Notes under the pieces: model-generated
The model's database searches: none
Seen by the model: only the letters and a program-made list of their open reading frames with translations
Told to the model about the DNA's origin: nothing
In this document: positions 11,048-56,704 of the stretch, in pieces
How the letters are laid out: each line of letters starts with the position of its first letter
How positions within the stretch are numbered: the stretch's first letter is position 1
Program-made: the position numbers and the translations under genes
Assembly: GCA_964057225.1 (NCBI GenBank)
Contig: OZ059894.1
Span: 12,152,001-12,216,000, forward strand
Direction of reading: 5' to 3'
From: Auanema rhodensis
Lineage: Eukaryota; Animalia; Nematoda
DNA: 64,000 nucleotides

Positions 11048-12226
11048 ACAGTAAAAAGTCCAATCAAGAGAGAAATTTTTTCAACACATAGTTGTTTTTT
11101 TTTTAAATATCATTGTTTTTCCTCATAACTCGGTTTAAACTCGTTCTAACCCGTTGAAATACGTCTAGAAAGTCTTTATAACATGCATATGTATGATAGA
11201 ACTTCATATTTATTGTAATAGAAAATTTTATTTTCAGACGTCTTGGTTAACAATGATATGTTTTACCCCCTTATAATTTTTATCATAATGTTCCTTATAC
11301 GGAACGCTCAATGAAACTTGCTTCCAGAAAAATTTCTTTCTATTTTTTCTTCATATGTACGTAGATACTATAGAGAACTATGATAGAAAACTTTAACATT
11401 CACGAAATCATCATTTCTCATTACGCTACGGAGGTTTAAAAAGCTGTGTTTTACCTTATAATAGACCGGAAAACCCTTGTGTTAAAACTGGACCGTTTTT
11501 ACACATATAAAAATGTCCCGTATTCGGGACCCTAATGTAACTTTTGATTCCCTATATTTTTTTTCATGAAATTTACAATCTACTGTAGAAAGAAGAATTA
11601 TTTTTATAAAAACTGTAAATTTTTGAAAAATGAAAACAAAACGAAAACAAAAACAACTTTTTTTTGAACATTTTCTCACACAAGGGTCCCCCCTTACCTA
11701 CTTTTTTTCTCATTACTCGTTTCAACCTCATCCGATCACTCTGCAAACATGTTTAATCGTTCTAACTTGTTGAAATACGTCTTAAAAGTCTAAACAACAT
11801 GCATATGCATAATAGAAACCACCCGAATAGGCCCCCACGCACTAAACGAGATATATACATTACCAGTATAGTAATAGAACACATATTGAAGATTAATTCG
11901 ATAAGAACAATTTATTGACGTAGAGAATGTTTGTTCCGAAAAACTACAATATTAAACTATAAAAGTAACAAAAGCGTAGAGGCAGCAAAGACATGAATAA
12001 ACATAAATGTAAATACAGAATTACCAGGTAGTACATAAGTATGACAAAAAATTATAAGAAAGCCATGAAAATAGAAGGTTTGTGAACAAATGAGAGGTAC
12101 ATCTTTGATCGTATAGTCATTTCTAAACCGTTCGTATGCTGCAGCATCGTCATAAGCGTCACTCAAGTTGAATTTCCATGTGTACTACACGATTTTCATT
12201 CTTATTGTTACATTCTTTCCCTGAGG

Positions 12227-13334: not shown

Positions 13335-14683
13335 AATGTCATATTCTTCATTATCAGTTATATCACTCTAAATCTTGTTGTTAATAGATACGACCACAAA
13401 GAAAACAACAGGAACAGTAACAATAACAAAAAAAATTTTTTTTTCACCTATGTGTCTAAAGGTTAGCCATGTATCCGTTTATATATATATATATATATAT
13501 ATCAACAGTAAAAAGTCCAATCAAGAGAGAAATTTTTTCAACACATAGTTGTTTTTTTTTTAAATATCATTGTTTTTCCTCATAACTCGGTTTAAACTCG
13601 TTCTAACCCGTTGAAATACGTCTAGAAAGTCTTTATAACATGCATATGTATGATAGAACTTCATATTTATTGTAATAGAAAATTTTATTTTCAGACGTCT
13701 TGGTTAACAATGATATGTTTTACCCCCTTATAATTTTTATCATAATGTTCCTTATACGGAACGCTCAATGAAACTTGCTTCCAGAAAAATTTCTTTCTAT
13801 TTTTTCTTCATATGTACGTAGATACTATAGAGAACTATGATAGAAAACTTTAACATTCACGAAATCATCATTTCTCATTACGCTACGGAGGTTTAAAAAG
13901 CTGTGTTTTACCTTATAATAGACCGGAAAACCCTTGTGTTAAAACTGGACCGTTTTTACACATATAAAAATGTCCCGTATTCGGGACCCTAATGTAACTT
14001 TTGATTCCCTATATTTTTTTTCATGAAATTTACAATCTACTGTAGAAAGAAGAATTATTTTTATAAAAACTGTAAATTTTTGAAAAATGAAAACAAAACG
14101 AAAACAAAAACAACTTTTTTTTGAACATTTTCTCACACAAGGGTCCCCCCTTACCTACTTTTTTTCTCATTACTCGTTTCAACCTCATCCGATCACTCTG
14201 CAAACATGTTTAATCGTTCTAACTTGTTGAAATACGTCTTAAAAGTCTAAACAACATGCATATGCATAATAGAAACCACCCGAATAGGCCCCCACGCACT
14301 AAACGAGATATATACATTACCAGTATAGTAATAGAACACATATTGAAGATTAATTCGATAAGAACAATTTATTGACGTAGAGAATGTTTGTTCCGAAAAA
14401 CTACAATATTAAACTATAAAAGTAACAAAAGCGTAGAGGCAGCAAAGACATGAATAAACATAAATGTAAATACAGAATTACCAGGTAGTACATAAGTATG
14501 ACAAAAAATTATAAGAAAGCCATGAAAATAGAAGGTTTGTGAACAAATGAGAGGTACATCTTTGATCGTATAGTCATTTCTAAACCGTTCGTATGCTGCA
14601 GCATCGTCATAAGCGTCACTCAAGTTGAATTTCCATGTGTACTACACGATTTTCATTCTTATTGTTACATTCTTTCCCTGAGG

Positions 14684-14833
14684 GAATGGGCCGTTCCCGC
14701 CAGCAGTGCAAGAGCGGGTCGACCCGTGAGGTGGAGCTAGCAAGCCAGCATCTACCTCAAGTCTCAAAAATCGGTTAACCTTATTGTGAACCAATGGAAC
14801 ACATATCGAAGGTTAATTCGATAAGAACGATTA
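14684..14833 (-). pseudogene. U2: 3' part (nt ~38-187) of the interrupted U2 gene
   Basis: Identical to the U2 unit up to the element 3' junction. Confidence 0.93.
14775..14833. repeat. Left copy of 59-bp direct repeat flanking the retrotransposon (right copy 18561-18619)
   Basis: ttaaccttat...gaacgatta is present identically on both sides. Confidence 0.95.
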
Positions 14834-17800
14834 ATGGTTTATTGAATAACTAATGTTATGAAACAATAAATAACCAATAAAAAAGAGCCCAGAATCGGGG
14901 AGACGGTATTACCAGTACAACTTAAAACAGCAAGTGATTAAAAAGTACAAAATAAAACACATTACCAACAGAGGCTAAAACGACTCAAGAGTCGGGGGAG
15001 TGGGTTAAAAAAAGTAATGAATAACAAAAAAAATGAATAATAAAGCAGAACAGTGAAAAGTAAATATCAAGTGCCGCTATGATCAAACAATTTGAGTGCC
15101 TACGGCAATGGTGTTAAAAATAAACAACAAAATACATGTACCAATGAAGGTCAGAAAGAGAGAAAGAAAAAAGACAAAAATAAGTAATACAAAAAGTAAA
15201 AAATATATTACAGTCAAATCACAAACAAGTCAATGGATAATTTCTTCTTCATACTGCCTTACACCAGAAACATGTTCCACGTAGATATTCCTGGCCCACT
15301 TGATGGTATCGGCGACGACGAGCTTCTCCATTAGCCGGTTGTAGTGGCTGCTGATCTTGAGTGATCGGAGGGCTTGTACGTTGAGCGGGTCCATAGTTCC
15401 AAGCATTCCTACGACATACGCTTCTACACTAGTCTTATAACCAAGACATTGGTATTGGCTGGCTATGTCAGCATATTTCCTCTCCTTTATCATACGCGCG
15501 GCTATCATGGCTTGTCGGCGGTTTTCATAGCTCACTGTAACATCAACGATACTACAGTGTTTTGCGTCATGATCGACCACTACTATGTCAGGTCGGAGTG
15601 TACTATTAATGCCAGGAAGAGGCTGGTTAGTGTAAACTTCTCCGTTTTTAGGCTCTGGCAGGGCTTTGATAAGACGGTCCACGATGTTGTTGTGGCGGAG
15701 TTGGATTGCTCTCGTGTGAAAGTGGCAGTGTCCAAGAACATGTGCAGCAGTTTCGTTGGGGTAACTACACCTGCGGCACTGTTTGTTTCCTTCTCCGTGT
15801 CTTCTACAGCCATTGAGCTGGAGAGTATTAAGTCGAGCCTTGTGGATGAATCGCCAATCAGCAAACCGTATGAAATCTCCCTTCGCCATAAAGTGATTGG
15901 ACGCTTTGTTGAGCATTGTGACATCAAAGACTTTCCCTTGATCCGGTTTTTGAAGAAGGATCCGAAGGTCTTTCAGCCATAATGCACGTCGCAGGCTTCT
16001 GTGGCATAGTGAAGGTGTTAACAGTTGGTTGTTTAGATTGAGTTCTAAACCACTTTCGAGGCATGTCCAGTTAGCGTTGATGAGTTTCTTGAGTTGACGC
16101 ATCGCTACTCTTACTCTAGTCCAGATGGAGGAAACATCAGATGTTTCGGTGTCGAAAATGCCATCAACGGAACCGTTGTAATATGCAGCTGTCTCATCGT
16201 TACTGGCTTGACGTTTAATCCTTTTTGATGCTACTTTTATTGAGTCTTGATGCGCAATATCAGCTACTACAAGATCAGATGACTTCAAAAGTTGGTAGGC
16301 ATGAGTGACTTCACAGACGTCTGACAGGTGTTGGAGTCGAGAGAGACCAAGTCCGCCGTAGTTGGTTGGCAGGTAGATTGGTTCAGCACTGGCGTTTGGA
16401 GGATAGTGCATCCATCTACGGGCACAGCGTTTGAGTTCTTTGTCAAAGGCGACTAGTTTACTCTTTGGGACGTGGCCATTCGTCATATGAAAATTAAGGC
16501 AGGGCATCAGGAAGGTGCGTACTGCGTCAGCTTTCTGCCATTCAGCCAGTAAGGATTTGTCAATTTTTTCCAAGTGTTGACTCATGATATTCACTGTTGG
16601 AACCGCAGACTTATGTAAATGCATTCCAGTAGGGATTCCCAGGTGGGAGTAGCTGTCAAATTTGCTGAGAGCGGGTAGAAAGCAGCTCTGAAGCATGTAT
16701 GAGGCTGTTGATATTTTCCCTTTGTCGATCGTCAAAGTGGCGCATTTCGCTGGTTTGAAGGTCAAGCCTGTGAAATTAGCCGCATTTGATGCTGCGTCCA
16801 ACATTTTCTGTAGATCTTCTGATGATGAGGAGACCAGGGCAAGGTCATCGGCGTACGCTAGCACAGCGATGTTGTGATTGTGTAGCTTATAGCCTGTAGA
16901 GGTTTCCAAGATGGTTTTAATTAGAGGTTCAATGGCAAGGTTGAACAGGATCGGAGATAGTGGGGATCCTTGTAACACACCTGCGTGAACTGGAATGGTC
17001 GAAGTGAGTCCGGAGCCTGTCTGGATTCTTGTAGAGGCATCTGTGTATAGAGCTCGTACTCGGGATATTGAGGCTTCAGCCATTCCTGACCATCTTAGAA
17101 CGTCTAGCAGAGTTTCGTGTGGCAGCGATCCAAAAGCGTTTGCGAGATCAAGCCAAGCAATTGCAATTTTCTCACGTTTACGTTTAGCGTCTGCAATGGT
17201 ACTTTGCAACAAAAAGTTGTGTTCCATGCATCCAGCTTTGGCCACAAAGCCCTTTTGGGAGGGAGAAAGTCTTTTTTCTGCTCTTGCCCATGTTAGCAGT
17301 CGATGCGTAAGACAAGCTGAGTACGTCTTACCAATTGTGCACGAAAGTGCTATTGGTCGCCAGTTGTTAATGTCAGCTTTATCACCTTTCTTATGGATGA
17401 GGACGGTGGTCGACTCTTTCCAGGAAAAAGGGATGTGTCCTAGCTTGTGTACGGTGTTAAATATCGCTGCTAATATGTGACCTCCTTGGTCAAATTTCTT
17501 CCAGTGCGAGTATCGAAGTCCATCAGCTCCTGGAGCCGTATCGCTGCAACGTCGTATGCGTTCCCAGACTTCCAAAGGGGTGAAAACACCTTCTAATGGG
17601 TCGGTACTAGTTGGCAAATCCGGTCTGGTGACTGTGATGGGGAGGGCTGGGCCTTGACTGCTGTGAACAGAAAGGAAGTGTTTTTCAACATCTGCAGATG
17701 GTATGGTGCAGGTTTCACTTTGTTCTCCGAGCAGTTGTCGAAAGGCTTTCTTCTTGTTGGCCCTCCAAAGCTTCTGGATCTTCATCGCCTGGGTTTTTTG

Positions 17801-18560
17801 GTCTTCCTCAGGTTGTGTGTGTGGTCGGCGCCTTTGTCGGAAGTTGGGAACTTTGATCATAATGTCAAGAGACTTTCTGATTGTGTCTACCAACTCTTCC
17901 AGGACCTGCTCGAGCTCACTTTTGCATACTACCTTTTTAATTCTATCCACCCAAATATTTTCAGAGTTTCTATTCGGATCAGGGTCGGCAAAAGATGGTT
18001 CTGTACTCGGAACCCTGATCTCGTTGAATATTACACTCTCTCGCGGAAGGGGGGAAACTTCGGCCTCTGGGGACAAGTCCAGAATTGGGGCCTCAAACAA
18101 GCGTACCGTTGATGGAGATCCTTGTTCCTGTCCACTGGATGATGTTTCCTCCATTGTACGCTCCTCCACGGGCGGGGTGGTCGTCCTTGTGCCTGGTGGG
18201 CGGGTGTTCCTGATCCTCCGCAATATAGGGCGGGAACTGGGCTCTCTCGGAGATAGAGGTGAGATCACCACAGTTTCCTCTATGATGCGGAGGCATCCTT
18301 CAGCTTTTTTCTGATGGCTTTTAACGGCCTTCAGATTGCTGGTGAGGCCACAGGCACGGCACTCAAATTCTACTCCGACCTCATGTTCTCTCCGAAGATG
18401 GCGGACGAGACCATTGTGGTCTGAGTAGGATCGCGGAATAGGAGCGCAGATTGAACAAGAAAAAGGGCTCTGAAGAGGCACCTTTAGCTTGTAAAGCCCT
18501 TGCTCCATCTCTAGCAGATCTAAAGACTTACGTAGTACAGTTGCAATATCGATTTAGCCA
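14834..18560 (-). mobile_element. U2-snRNA-specific non-LTR retrotransposon (RLE type, Utopia-like), apparently intact
   Basis: Unique, more GC-rich segment inserted in U2 immediately after GTGTAGTA, same orientation as U2; single RT+RLE ORF; ~400-nt 3' UTR ending AATAAACCAT; 3' junction ambiguous over 14832-14834. Confidence 0.95.
15230..18508 (-). CDS. Retrotransposon protein (1092 aa): N-terminal zinc fingers, reverse transcriptase, CCHC knuckle, restriction-like endonuclease
   Basis: CSIC..HLRREH and CRAC..H zinc fingers; RT motifs APGADG, NWRPIAL, QKGF, WLDLANAFGSLPH, GVLQGSPLSP, YADD (16844-16855); CRRC..ETAAHVLGHC; RHN, RPDIVV, DVTV, KERKY; no stops or frameshifts. Confidence 0.97.
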   Translation of the reverse strand: MEQGLYKLKVPLQSPFSCSICAPIPRSYSDHNGLVRHLRREHEVGVEFECRACGLTSNLKAVKSHQKKAEGCLRIIEETVVISPLSPREPSSRPILRRIRNTRPPGTRTTTPPVEERTMEETSSSGQEQGSPSTVRLFEAPILDLSPEAEVSPLPRESVIFNEIRVPSTEPSFADPDPNRNSENIWVDRIKKVVCKSELEQVLEELVDTIRKSLDIMIKVPNFRQRRRPHTQPEEDQKTQAMKIQKLWRANKKKAFRQLLGEQSETCTIPSADVEKHFLSVHSSQGPALPITVTRPDLPTSTDPLEGVFTPLEVWERIRRCSDTAPGADGLRYSHWKKFDQGGHILAAIFNTVHKLGHIPFSWKESTTVLIHKKGDKADINNWRPIALSCTIGKTYSACLTHRLLTWARAEKRLSPSQKGFVAKAGCMEHNFLLQSTIADAKRKREKIAIAWLDLANAFGSLPHETLLDVLRWSGMAEASISRVRALYTDASTRIQTGSGLTSTIPVHAGVLQGSPLSPILFNLAIEPLIKTILETSTGYKLHNHNIAVLAYADDLALVSSSSEDLQKMLDAASNAANFTGLTFKPAKCATLTIDKGKISTASYMLQSCFLPALSKFDSYSHLGIPTGMHLHKSAVPTVNIMSQHLEKIDKSLLAEWQKADAVRTFLMPCLNFHMTNGHVPKSKLVAFDKELKRCARRWMHYPPNASAEPIYLPTNYGGLGLSRLQHLSDVCEVTHAYQLLKSSDLVVADIAHQDSIKVASKRIKRQASNDETAAYYNGSVDGIFDTETSDVSSIWTRVRVAMRQLKKLINANWTCLESGLELNLNNQLLTPSLCHRSLRRALWLKDLRILLQKPDQGKVFDVTMLNKASNHFMAKGDFIRFADWRFIHKARLNTLQLNGCRRHGEGNKQCRRCSYPNETAAHVLGHCHFHTRAIQLRHNNIVDRLIKALPEPKNGEVYTNQPLPGINSTLRPDIVVVDHDAKHCSIVDVTVSYENRRQAMIAARMIKERKYADIASQYQCLGYKTSVEAYVVGMLGTMDPLNVQALRSLKISSHYNRLMEKLVVADTIKWARNIYVEHVSGVRQYEEEIIH

Positions 18561-18656
18561 TTAACCTTATTGTGAACCAATGGAACACATATCGAAGGTT
18601 AATTCGATAAGAACGATTACTACACTTTGATCTTAGCCAAAAGGCCGAGAAGCGAT
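18561..18656 (-). pseudogene. U2: 5' part (nt 1-96) of the interrupted U2 gene, fused to the element 5' end
   Basis: ATCGCTTCTCGG...AAGGTTAA followed by element sequence TGGCTAAATCG. Confidence 0.93.
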
Positions 18657-53618: not shown

Positions 53619-54796
53619 ACAGTAAAAAGTCCAATCAAGAGAGAAATTTTTTCAACACATAGTTGTTTTTTTTTAAATATCATTGTTTTTCCTCATAACT
53701 CGGTTTAAACTCGTTCTAACCCGTTGAAATACGTCTAGAAAGTCTTTATAACATGCATATGTATGATAGAACTTCATATTTATTGTAATAGAAAATTTTA
53801 TTTTCAGACGTCTTGGTTAACAATGATATGTTTTACCCCCTTATAATTTTTATCATAATGTTCCTTATACGGAACGCTCAATGAAACTTGCTTCCAGAAA
53901 AATTTCTTTCTATTTTTTCTTCATATGTACGTAGATACTATAGAGAACTATGATAGAAAACTTTAACATTCACGAAATCATCATTTCTCATTACGCTACG
54001 GAGGTTTAAAAAGCTGTGTTTTACCTTATAATAGACCGGAAAACCCTTGTGTTAAAACTGGACCGTTGTTACACATATAAAAATGTCCCGTATTCGGGAC
54101 CCTAATGTAACTTTTGATTCCCTATATTTTTTTTCATGAAATTTACAATCTACTGTAGAAAGAAGAATTATTTTTATAAAAACTGTAAATTTTTGAAAAA
54201 TGAAAACAAAACGAAAACAAAAACAACTTTTTTTTGAACATTTTCTCACACAAGGGTCCCCCCTTACCTACTTTTTTTCTCATTACTCGTTTCAACCTCA
54301 TCCGATCACTCTGCAAACATGTTTAATCGTTCTAACTTGTTGAAATACGTCTTAAAAGTCTAAACAACATGCATATGCATAATAGAAACCACCCGAATAG
54401 GCCCCCACGCACTAAACGAGATATATACATTACCAGTATAGTAATAGAACACATATTGAAGATTAATTCGATAAGAACAATTTATTGACGTAGAGAATGT
54501 TTGTTCCGAAAAACTACAATATTAAACTATAAAAGTAACAAAAGCGTAGAGGCAGCAAAGACATGAATAAACATAAATGTAAATACAGAATTACCAGGTA
54601 GTACATAAGTATGACAAAAAATTATAAGAAAGCCATGAAAATAGAAGGTTTGTGAACAAATGAGAGGTACATCTTTGATCGTATAGTCATTTCTAAACCG
54701 TTCGTATGCTGCAGCATCGTCATAAGCGTCACTCAAGTTGAATTTCCATGTGTACTACACGATTTTCATTCTTATTGTTACATTCTTTCCCTGAGG

Positions 54797-54983
54797 GAAT
54801 GGGCCGTTCCCGCCAGCAGTGCAAGAGCGGGTCGACCCGTGAGGTGGAGCTAGCAAGCCAGCATCTACCTCAAGTCTCAAAAATCGGTTAACCTTATTGT
54901 GAACCAATGGAACACATATCGAAGGTTAATTCGATAAGAACGATTACTACACTTTGATCTTAGCCAAAAGGCCGAGAAGCGAT
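54797..54983 (-). ncRNA. U2: U2 snRNA
   Basis: Repeat copy. Confidence 0.95.
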
Positions 54984-55245
54984 ACAGCATAGCCATGAGT
55001 ATCAAAGACATCAAGCAAATGTATCGTACTTGTTACGAGTGCACTCTCTCATTTGAATATAAAAGTGTGGTTTGACAATCTTGACTGTACAGGTCATAAA
55101 TGGCTCATATAAACTGTGGATTTACTCAACTTTTGGACTTATTTTTTTCTTATTCGAAGCGCTGCACTTTTTTCTATTCTTTTTATTCAAATACTTGTAT
55201 ATAGTTTTATATGTACGGTTGCAAAGTTTCCGAATATTTTATATA

Positions 55246-55282
55246 TTGAAAAAATTTCTCTCTTGATTGGACTTTTTACTGT

Positions 55283-55338
<56 letters not shown>

Positions 55339-55375
55339 ACAGTAAAAAGTCCAATCAAGAGAGAAATTTTTTCAA
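55246..55375. repeat. Perfect 130-bp palindrome: 39-bp arms around (AT)26
   Basis: ttgaaaaaatttctctcttgattggactttttactgttg is the exact reverse complement of caacagtaaaaagtccaatcaagagagaaattttttcaa. Confidence 0.95.
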
Positions 55376-56517
55376 CACATAGTTGTTTTTTTTTTAAATA
55401 TCATTGTTTTTCCTCATAACTCGGTTTAAACTCGTTCTAACCCGTTGAAATACGTCTAGAAAGTCTTTATAACATGCATATGTATGATAGAACTTCATAT
55501 TTATTGTAATAGAAAATTTTATTTTCAGACGTCTTGGTTAACAATGATATGTTTTACCCCCTTATAATTTTTATCATAATGTTCCTTATACGGAACGCTC
55601 AATGAAACTTGCTTCCAGAAAAATTTCTTTCTATTTTTTCTTCATATGTACGTAGATACTATAGAGAACTATGATAGAAAACTTTAACATTCACGAAATC
55701 ATCATTTCTCATTACGCTACGGAGGTTTAAAAAGCTGTGTTTTACCTTATAATAGACCGGAAAACCCTTGTGTTAAAACTGGACCGTTTTTACACATATA
55801 AAAATGTCCCGTATTCGGGACCCTAATGTAACTTTTGATTCCCTATATTTTTTTTCATGAAATTTACAATCTACTGTAGAAAGAAGAATTATTTTTATAA
55901 AAACTGTAAATTTTTGAAAAATGAAAACAAAACGAAAACAAAAACAACTTTTTTTTGAACATTTTCTCACACAAGGGTCCCCCCTTACCTACTTTTTTTC
56001 TCATTACTCGTTTCAACCTCATCCGATCACTCTGCAAACATGTTTAATCGTTCTAACTTGTTGAAATACGTCTTAAAAGTCTAAACAACATGCATATGCA
56101 TAATAGAAACCACCCGAATAGGCCCCCACGCACTAAACGAGATATATACATTACCAGTATAGTAATAGAACACATATTGAAGATTAATTCGATAAGAACA
56201 ATTTATTGACGTAGAGAATGTTTGTTCCGAAAAACTACAATATTAAACTATAAAAGTAACAAAAGCGTAGAGGCAGCAAAGACATGAATAAACATAAATG
56301 TAAATACAGAATTACCAGGTAGTACATAAGTATGACAAAAAATTATAAGAAAGCCATGAAAATAGAAGGTTTGTGAACAAATGAGAGGTACATCTTTGAT
56401 CGTATAGTCATTTCTAAACCGTTCGTATGCTGCAGCATCGTCATAAGCGTCACTCAAGTTGAATTTCCATGTGTACTACACGATTTTCATTCTTATTGTT
56501 ACATTCTTTCCCTGAGG

Positions 56518-56704
56518 GAATGGGCCGTTCCCGCCAGCAGTGCAAGAGCGGGTCGACCCGTGAGGTGGAGCTAGCAAGCCAGCATCTACCTCAAGTCTCA
56601 AAAATCGGTTAACCTTATTGTGAACCAATGGAACACATATCGAAGGTTAATTCGATAAGAACGATTACTACACTTTGATCTTAGCCAAAAGGCCGAGAAG
56701 CGAT
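56518..56704 (-). ncRNA. U2: U2 snRNA
   Basis: Repeat copy. Confidence 0.95.

Follow-up and report, generated by a model that had tools for sequence, protein, structure and literature searches.

Utopia elements are retrotransposons without long terminal repeats (non-LTR) that carry a restriction-like endonuclease (RLE), belong to the NeSL clade and are specific for the genes of U2 small nuclear RNA (snRNA), with the downstream part of U2 starting right after GUAGUA, at canonical nucleotide (nt) 39 (PMC4640811). The Utopia protein has 1-3 N-terminal zinc fingers, a reverse transcriptase (RT), a C-terminal zinc finger and a PD..D/ExK endonuclease; tandem insertions are found in Nasonia, and flanking duplications are absent in arthropods and 20 bp long in reptiles (PMC4640811). 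The absence of a Myb domain is a criterion separating Utopia from R2, and in some Utopia proteins the fingers form a co-folded pair like that of lineage-A R2 (PMC13188248). Here we describe an element of this kind from the nematode Auanema rhodensis, in a 64,000-nt stretch referred to below as the window (contig OZ059894.1, abbreviated C1; C1:12152001-12216000 of a 181-Mb assembly). To our knowledge, Utopia is known from sequence only, and no member has been shown to be active or studied biochemically. The element very probably represents a new Utopia family that was recently active, and probably still is, within a 1.3-Mb array of U2-5S-5S units. The Utopia kind itself is already known; what would be new, and is well supported by the junctions described below, is the family together with an RNA putatively headed by the U2 start site and a pseudo-duplication that would be inherited with it.

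The element and its U2 junctions

The window is a tandem array, running on the minus strand, in which Rfam identifies, per unit of about 2.48 kb, one gene for U2 snRNA and two for 5S ribosomal RNA (rRNA). There are 23 intact U2 copies of equal Rfam score and one split copy, for a total of 24. Rfam sees the split gene as two parts, 18548-18656 and 14681-14859, between which the GC content climbs from about 0.33 to 0.39-0.46. What splits it is the non-LTR retrotransposon proper, 3,727 nt at window 14834-18560; like all of its parts given below, it is on the minus strand. The insertion point is directly after GTGTAGTA (U2 nt 39), and the 3' flank opens at U2 nt 40 (window 14831) and continues to nt 190 as the 3' part of the disrupted gene (14681-14831, by Rfam and direct reading). 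Between the two, the bases TA at 14832-14833 fit the element end as well as they fit U2 nt 38-39, leaving the junction ambiguous by that much. The U2 flanks on both sides are 100% identical to intact U2. An initial annotation, made from the letters of the window, had described an insertion into 1 of 24 U2 copies with unmutated flanks and an uninterrupted open reading frame (ORF) of 1092 amino acids (aa), and both descriptions hold. The single ORF, 1,092 codons plus the stop, occupies 15230-18508 (ORF list and translation, read from 18508 to 15230 with no internal stop). It is preceded by a 52-nt 5' untranslated region (UTR) at 18509-18560, with TACTAC at 18532-18537, and followed by a 396-nt 3' UTR at 14834-15229, with AATAAA at 14838-14843, 4 nt from the last unambiguous element base.

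Directly 5' of the element there is U2 nt 1-96 (18561-18656, by direct reading), which we call the head. It has 0 mismatches to intact U2, retains an intact nt 39/40 target site, and is itself preceded by the normal U2 upstream region (the 20 nt 5' of +1 are normal). A point absent from the initial annotation is that U2 nt 40-96, a stretch of 57 nt, is present on both sides of the element, with the upstream copy at 18561-18617. The origin of this repeat is taken up below.

Copies and site specificity

A DNA search finds 43 matches and a protein search 62 scored matches to the element, all on C1 between 10.93 and 12.22 Mb. For copy-level reading, 30 full-length copies were fetched; the rest of the array is covered by exact-pattern counts and coordinates. 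Counted by exact pattern over the whole assembly, there are 47 full-length 5' junctions (U2 nt 85-96 followed by the element start), 74 element 3' ends, and 70 standard 3' junctions to ATCGTTCTTATCG. The remaining four 3' ends are variants read in fetched loci, three of them in L021-L023 and one in a short copy in L020, all adjoining U2. The initial annotation had suggested a survey of genomic copies and junctions for insertions outside U2, and the survey finds none: 74 of 74 element 3' ends adjoin U2 nt 40.

The assembly has 763 copies of U2 nt 40-69 and 399 uninterrupted target sites, indicating that about 364 sites carry some insertion; this Utopia family accounts for 74 of them. The two strands differ, with 152 copies of U2 nt 40-69 versus 14 intact target sites on the forward strand and 611 versus 385 on the reverse strand, so that the forward-oriented array blocks seem almost fully occupied.

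Origin of the 57-nt repeat

The repeat could be read as a true 57-bp target-site duplication, produced by a bottom-strand cut at U2 39/40 and a top-strand cut at 96/97, with an element RNA that has no U2 head. Such a reading would suit the nt-96 junction being identical in all 47 full-length copies, the attribution of the 20-bp duplications of reptile Utopia to staggered cuts (PMC4640811), and the presence in the array of a second element type with its own fixed leader, U2 nt 40-79. It is contradicted by the truncated copies. The two that still have a U2 5' part are a 168-nt copy in L020 (read directly; pattern match C1:12097152) and a copy starting near element position 379 (next to pattern match C1:11183062), and both join U2 exactly at nt 39, not at nt 96. 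Exact patterns reveal no case anywhere in the genome of U2 nt 96 joined to A or G, and likewise no case of nt 40 followed by a base other than T. Contrary evidence also comes from 7 of the 30 full-length copies, in which the head lacks normal U2 upstream sequence before it. These heads begin at U2 +1 (L009, L019, L025), +2 (L016/L017, L030) or +4 (L023), and are fused to array-unit positions 475, 500, 1034, 1215, 2439 and 2446, making six junction classes, some with 6-9 extra bases or short microhomology at the join. A staggered cut cannot produce heads starting at +1 to +4 beside unrelated DNA. If the RNA being copied starts where U2 does, and the end of its DNA copy is now and then joined to broken DNA upstream, one would expect just such a cluster of six independent breakpoints, all within four bases of the U2 start. 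Hence, we give the staggered-cut origin very little credence. The element RNA appears to start at the start site of host U2, as the junction footprints show indirectly, and the 57-nt repeat is best described, with good support from the same junctions, as a putative pseudo target-site duplication borne by the element RNA.

Several observations weigh against an RNA headed by U2. Locus L026 (C1:11383737-11390446) has a complete U2 with downstream spacer as far as unit position 1086, and then U2 nt 38-96 and the element, so the leader there starts at U2 nt 38 after array-unit position 1086. This junction would also fit an RNA processed at nt 39/40; alternatively, L026 may have come about through truncation combined with a loss upstream, through retro-copying of a read-through U2 transcript, or through a later deletion. 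The U2-headed RNA has two short upstream reading frames (upstream AUGs) before the main ATG, one of which arises at the U2/element junction (window 18509-18600, minus strand). Finally, snRNA-type promoters normally yield short RNAs. A ribozyme similar to that of hepatitis delta virus (HDV), or another 5' ribozyme, was considered as the cause of a processed 5' end and dropped, there being no Rfam match in the window and five loci at E up to 1.

The head stops at nt 96, immediately short of the Sm-site-like ATTTTTG, and the TACTAC in the 5' UTR is complementary to the branch-point recognition sequence of U2, GUAGUA. In an RNA fold of the head plus leader, U2 nt 33-39 pairs with the TACTAC tract (z = -2.9, with 1 of 200 shuffles as stable). 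The anti-U2 tract in the leaders of three relatives introduced below (L032, L034 and L035) amounts to 6-nt matches only, not clearly above chance. AATAAA, found 4-13 nt before the 3' end both in the window element and in the same three relatives, points to RNAs that are polyadenylated and stop a few bases inside downstream U2. One might speculate, while doubting it, that the head is a working RNA module: a promoter-hijacked, Sm-site-less U2 fragment, whose branch-site reader would be paired in cis with TACTAC and which would guide 5' joining. If true, the module could affect the fate of the RNA, for example by keeping it out of small nuclear ribonucleoproteins (snRNPs) or by marking it for the element protein.

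The leader has another resemblance to record. In its sequence TACTAC-GTAAGT-CTTTAG one can see likenesses to a branch point, to a 5' splice site, and to an acceptor site (3' splice or trans-splice), the last of these 14 nt before the main ATG.

The protein

The domain content given in the initial annotation is borne out by motifs, Pfam and alignment to R2. By motif search there is a zinc-finger pair, CCHH + CCHC, at aa 18-72 (18293-18457). The RT occupies aa 371-593 (16730-17398; Pfam RVT_1, E = 5 × 10−28, and R2 alignment), with YADD found by motif search at aa 552-555 (16844-16855). A CCHC zinc knuckle at aa 911-928 (15725-15778) was found by motif search and aligned to the R2 knuckle. The restriction-like endonuclease core, aa 972-1015 (15464-15595), has the motifs RPD (aa 972-974), VDVTV (aa 988-992) and RKY (aa 1010-1012) of the PD-D/K type, aligned to PD / D-V-T / K-Y of R2. 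Alignments to solved R2 proteins run from the RT through the knuckle and endonuclease with E = 4 × 10−67 to 1 × 10−50 and with the catalytic motifs aligned. The stated lack of an Ulp1 protease also holds, since Pfam finds no Peptidase_C48/Ulp1 in the 1,092-aa protein even with permissive thresholds included. At E up to 10, Pfam likewise finds no Myb, whether in aa 73-300 or in the rest of the protein; nor does it find an apurinic/apyrimidinic endonuclease (APE) domain, the endonuclease being C-terminal and of the RLE type. The stretch of aa 76-236, in which E, P, R and S are abundant, has no match.

The zinc-finger pair is kept in 12 relatives with 12 invariant alignment columns. An AlphaFold (AF2) model of aa 1-95 has a predicted local distance difference test (pLDDT) score of 80, and its best PDB match is to the N-terminal fingers of R2Tg, the zebra-finch R2, with a root-mean-square deviation (rmsd) of 2.1 Å over 65 columns at 29-31% identity, although the Foldseek E is only 0.03-0.1. 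Classical tandem fingers fit the model at about 8 Å. The modelled likeness to R2Tg agrees with the co-folded pair reported for some Utopia proteins (PMC13188248). The pair is a probable reader of upstream DNA; by analogy with R2 structures, it would read the DNA upstream of the nick, which is canonical in this host.

Family placement

The best database proteins are two from metagenomes and a partial one from Diploscapter pachys, which are 59-61% identical. They are followed by proteins of Plectus, Globodera and Panagrolaimus (45-49%) and, further down, of scorpions and insects; these nearest proteins, like the form of U2, point to a nematode host. The database matches include none that is identical or nearly so, and scarcely any literature was found on nematode Utopia, so the element may still be called undescribed, as the initial annotation had supposed.

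The RT phylogeny proposed in that annotation was run as a quick maximum-likelihood tree of 106 proteins, unrooted. The element joins a Diploscapter-like group (support 100) beside a scorpion clade (93), inside a clade of nematodes and arthropods (99), and the Ulp1-bearing NeSL-like proteins fall outside the nematode and arthropod clade. Counting against the placement, the tree holds no Repbase reference sequences and no verified R2 outgroup; the outgroup candidates L036 and L037, which are basal matches, have no rRNA flank marking them as R2.

Three inner-clade relatives were checked for their 3' junctions, and all three end against canonical U2, TCTGTTCTTATC. They are L032, a metagenome contig; L034, Centruroides sculpturatus (KZ495641.1); and L035, Dendroctonus ponderosae, a species listed among Utopia hosts (PMC4640811). 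Among the closest relatives, the junction reading left out L031, where the contig stops inside the 3' UTR, L033 from Diploscapter, which is gapped and truncated, and P0002, whose contig comes without DNA. The Centruroides element has clearly similar N-terminal fingers. At L034:1900-1945, two Utopia copies are exactly 20 nt of U2 apart (TCTGTTCTTATCAGCTTAAT), the same length as the "20-bp duplication" of reptiles, and these 20 nt may also be an RNA-borne leader.

Recent activity and alternative readings

Among the fetched full-length copies, the 1,092-aa ORF is intact in 29 of 30 and interrupted by a stop in one. A main group of 17 copies of exactly 3,727 nt shows pairwise differences of 0-12 nt (median 4). 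At least 6 sequence groups can be told apart, 13-44 nt from each other in the ORF and with 3' UTR lengths of 378-407 nt. Variable ORF sites fall on codon positions 1/2/3 in the numbers 25/11/47, and in most comparisons between subfamilies the synonymous codon differences are at least as many as the non-synonymous ones, which is the pattern of lineages keeping a working protein while diverging. The protein search shows at least 14 distinct 5' truncation points, the 3' junction occurs in four forms among fetched loci, and several copies stand in tandem with 57-59 nt of U2 between them. Taken with the 47 full-length 5' junctions and 74 3' ends in U2, the open ORFs, low divergence and codon-position counts uphold the initial description of the element as recently active, and the family looks recently or currently active.

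Array recombination clearly copied some insertions, which weighs against reading each copy as an event: there are three identical truncated copies 3-5 kb apart, and junctions are common to L016/L017 and to L021-L023. Against present-day activity in particular, no insertion polymorphism and no empty/filled allele pair was seen, and no RNA run is on record for the host among public runs, so that current activity is what we infer from the copies. Three 20-Mb contig-only public runs of uncertain type, from one study, hold three element pieces of 157-241 nt at 100% identity, and these say nothing about transcript starts or expression. One may hence ask whether the family no longer transposes, with its copies spread and homogenised only by unequal crossing-over or gene conversion in the array; the segmental copies just listed, the missing polymorphism and RNA data, and the extreme homogeneity of an array with 23 identical U2 genes in the window would all be in keeping with that. 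Yet the truncation points, the 3'-junction variants, the six aberrant 5' joins and the repeated tandems each require separate retrotranspositions, the subfamilies diverge with a bias to third codon positions, and the 3.3-kb ORF is open in all but one of the fetched copies, so we consider a purely recombinational spread improbable. What the truncation, junction, codon and ORF data show is numerous past events in which the protein was selected to stay functional; they do not amount to proof of present-day activity.

A different question is whether the element is Utopia by descent, or an R2- or NeSL-type element that gained the U2 site independently, as the APE-type Keno did. Its best solved-structure matches are R2 proteins, its zinc-finger pair resembles that of lineage-A R2, and the tree is unrooted and without curated references. 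Nonetheless, it is nested with values of 98-100 in the Shimodaira-Hasegawa-like approximate likelihood ratio test (SH-aLRT) in a clade whose sampled members adjoin U2 at the same nucleotide, one of those members coming from the listed Utopia host Dendroctonus ponderosae, and it is without the Myb that is the hallmark of R2, without the Ulp1 that is the hallmark of NeSL, and has an RLE instead of an APE. Independent gain of the site is, in our judgment, extremely improbable. The identification as Utopia, which the initial annotation had already made, stands on an insertion point that is the same as published, on the tree placement, on the three relatives adjoining U2, and on the Ulp1-bearers lying outside the clade.

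The U2 target of the host

The bases after the insertion site are ATCGTT versus the canonical TCTGTT. Host U2 reads GTAGTA-ATCG-TTCTTATCG, and other eukaryotes, including the flanks of the relatives, read GTAGTA-TCTG-TTCTTATC. Because one extra A is present upstream in host U2, the insertion at U2 nt 40 here equals canonical nt 39. The canonical U2 site has no match anywhere in the assembly with one mismatch allowed, which makes the ATCG variant the host's only form of U2, and the element follows it. The "non-canonical target" of the initial annotation is hence true as to the bases but less special than it implied, the host having no other U2. Part of this fit also costs the element nothing, since the flank is the template of the RNA tail. 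If there is a matched enzyme for it, the ATCG target would make a natural orthogonal enzyme/target pair for insertion tools.

Proposed transposition cycle and significance

A full-length copy would be transcribed from the host U2 promoter, with the RNA starting at U2 +1, for which the junction footprints are indirect support. The RNA would run from U2 nt 1-96 through the 52-nt UTR and the ORF, and would probably end just past the conserved AAUAAA, a few bases into downstream U2, where its tail would pair with the nicked target as primer. The single protein would bind its own RNA and U2 DNA and nick the bottom strand between U2 nt 39 and 40, the nick then priming reverse transcription; this step is suggested by homology to R2 and by the invariant 3' junction. 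The cut in the second strand lies near the first, as is shown by truncated copies that join U2 nt 39 without duplication and without loss. The end of a full-length complementary DNA (cDNA), the complement of U2 1-96, could then pair with the target's own U2 1-39, and through this pairing each full-length insertion would rebuild promoter, head and target site while mimicking a 57-bp duplication. When the pairing failed, a head starting at +1 to +4 would be joined to broken DNA further upstream. A rebuilt target site could be struck again, yielding tandem copies.

This family has intact, almost identical copies by the dozen, and its only target is repeated in a huge natural array, which makes it probably the best available candidate for Utopia biochemistry. 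The junction footprints lead to a testable mechanism in which the element secures a promoter and a clean 5' junction by carrying the front of the host gene on its RNA, and in the variant U2 target nature has provided a way to test the enzyme's base recognition. RNA-templated gene insertion is now built on R2; a compact, Myb-less relative at another multicopy locus would be worth comparing with it, and as a natural system the element lends itself well to modelling such insertion at a single precise site. In light of the result, the published "target-site duplications" of related elements would deserve a second look. If the head is indeed a working RNA module, an RNA-borne origin would extend to the fixed duplications of other RLE elements that sit in small-RNA genes, candidates being the 20 nt of reptile Utopia, the 20 nt between the scorpion copies in L034, and the SLACS repeat, and hijacking of the host start site with homology-guided 5' joining would be a general strategy.

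Other elements and features of the array

The same U2 nucleotide also harbours a non-coding element, about 790 bp long, which in many cases stands in tandem with the coding one. This is the second type mentioned above with the U2 nt 40-79 leader, and has a different tail ending ...CTTCAATAA. It is downstream of the coding element in L007, L009 (C1:11197840-11204566), L019 and L025, and upstream in L029 and L028; probably it is a non-autonomous rider. Its head contains ATACTACAC, complementary to U2 GTGTAGTAT. In L028 (C1:11333051-11339760), upstream of a full-length copy, the body of the 790-bp element lacks its own last ~55 nt and is joined instead to the last 179 nt of the coding element. 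The fusion looks like a template switch during reverse transcription.

The array also has a second coding family, at C1:10962226-10964379 on the minus strand, 58% identical from RT to endonuclease and with one in-frame TAA. In the window, a short array unit at 54794-56704 has a U2 spacing of 1,721 nt versus about 2,480 and is without 5S genes. A fossil 3' junction (window 11862-11959, minus strand) is fixed in the array at the same place in every unit: about 265 nt after U2 there is a rider-like tail relic (84-90% similar), followed by a piece resembling U2 nt 39-90 that reads ATTGTTCTTATCG.

On a JGI metagenome contig (L038:6100-6284, protein P0092), the terminal ...CGTAATAAACTCTAA of an Ulp1-bearing NeSL-like element adjoins a gene for U1 snRNA (Rfam U1, 78.9 bits; single copy seen). 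The junction appears to lie within the end of U1 that reads the 5' splice site, and a U1-specific RLE retrotransposon is possible.

Comparison with known systems

The element resembles described Utopia families, including nematode Utopia-1_PPac and those of arthropods (PMC4640811), in having one ORF with N-terminal zinc fingers, RT, CCHC and RLE, and a 3' junction at the base after the GUAGUA of U2. Its strict specificity is like that of Utopia in Phytophthora and Nasonia, and its tandem insertions are like those of Nasonia. It differs from known Utopia in its protein, for which no match above 61% identity was found, in the ATCG that replaces TCTG after the target site, and in a 57-nt U2 repeat where arthropod Utopia has none and reptile Utopia has 20 bp. 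With 399 free sites, the host array is also very large, in contrast to the low U2 copy number stressed for Utopia (PMC4640811).

The core of RT, linker, CCHC and RLE is like that of R2, the element of 28S ribosomal DNA (structures 8gh6, 9dou and 9nl3; best E = 4 × 10−67), and the co-folded N-terminal zinc-finger pair, here from the model, is like that of lineage-A R2. According to work of the Eickbush laboratory, R2 is reportedly expressed by co-transcription with its host gene and is said to owe the uniformity of its 5' junctions to host sequence on the RNA. Unlike R2, the present element targets U2 and not 28S, has no Myb, and has no detected HDV-like ribozyme; the host-derived head, apparently taken from the start site of the host gene, would be kept on the RNA and not cleaved off.

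Like NeSL-1, which is specific for the spliced-leader genes of nematodes, and SLACS/CZAR, specific for those of trypanosomes, this is an RLE element in small-RNA genes in tandem arrays. SLACS/CZAR have a 49-bp flanking repeat and transcripts that start at +1 of the spliced-leader gene. Their insertion site is nt 11/12 of the mini-exon (PMC5814959). In the tree, the clade that follows outwards is that of the NeSL-like proteins, and the element is unlike NeSL-1 in having no Ulp1 protease, the Ulp1-bearers forming a separate clade, and in targeting U2 and not the spliced-leader gene. The insertion nucleotide in U2 is identical to that of Keno, an APE-type non-LTR retrotransposon (PMC4640811), from which the element is separated by its C-terminal restriction-like endonuclease of the PD-D/K type, the APE of Keno being N-terminal to the RT.

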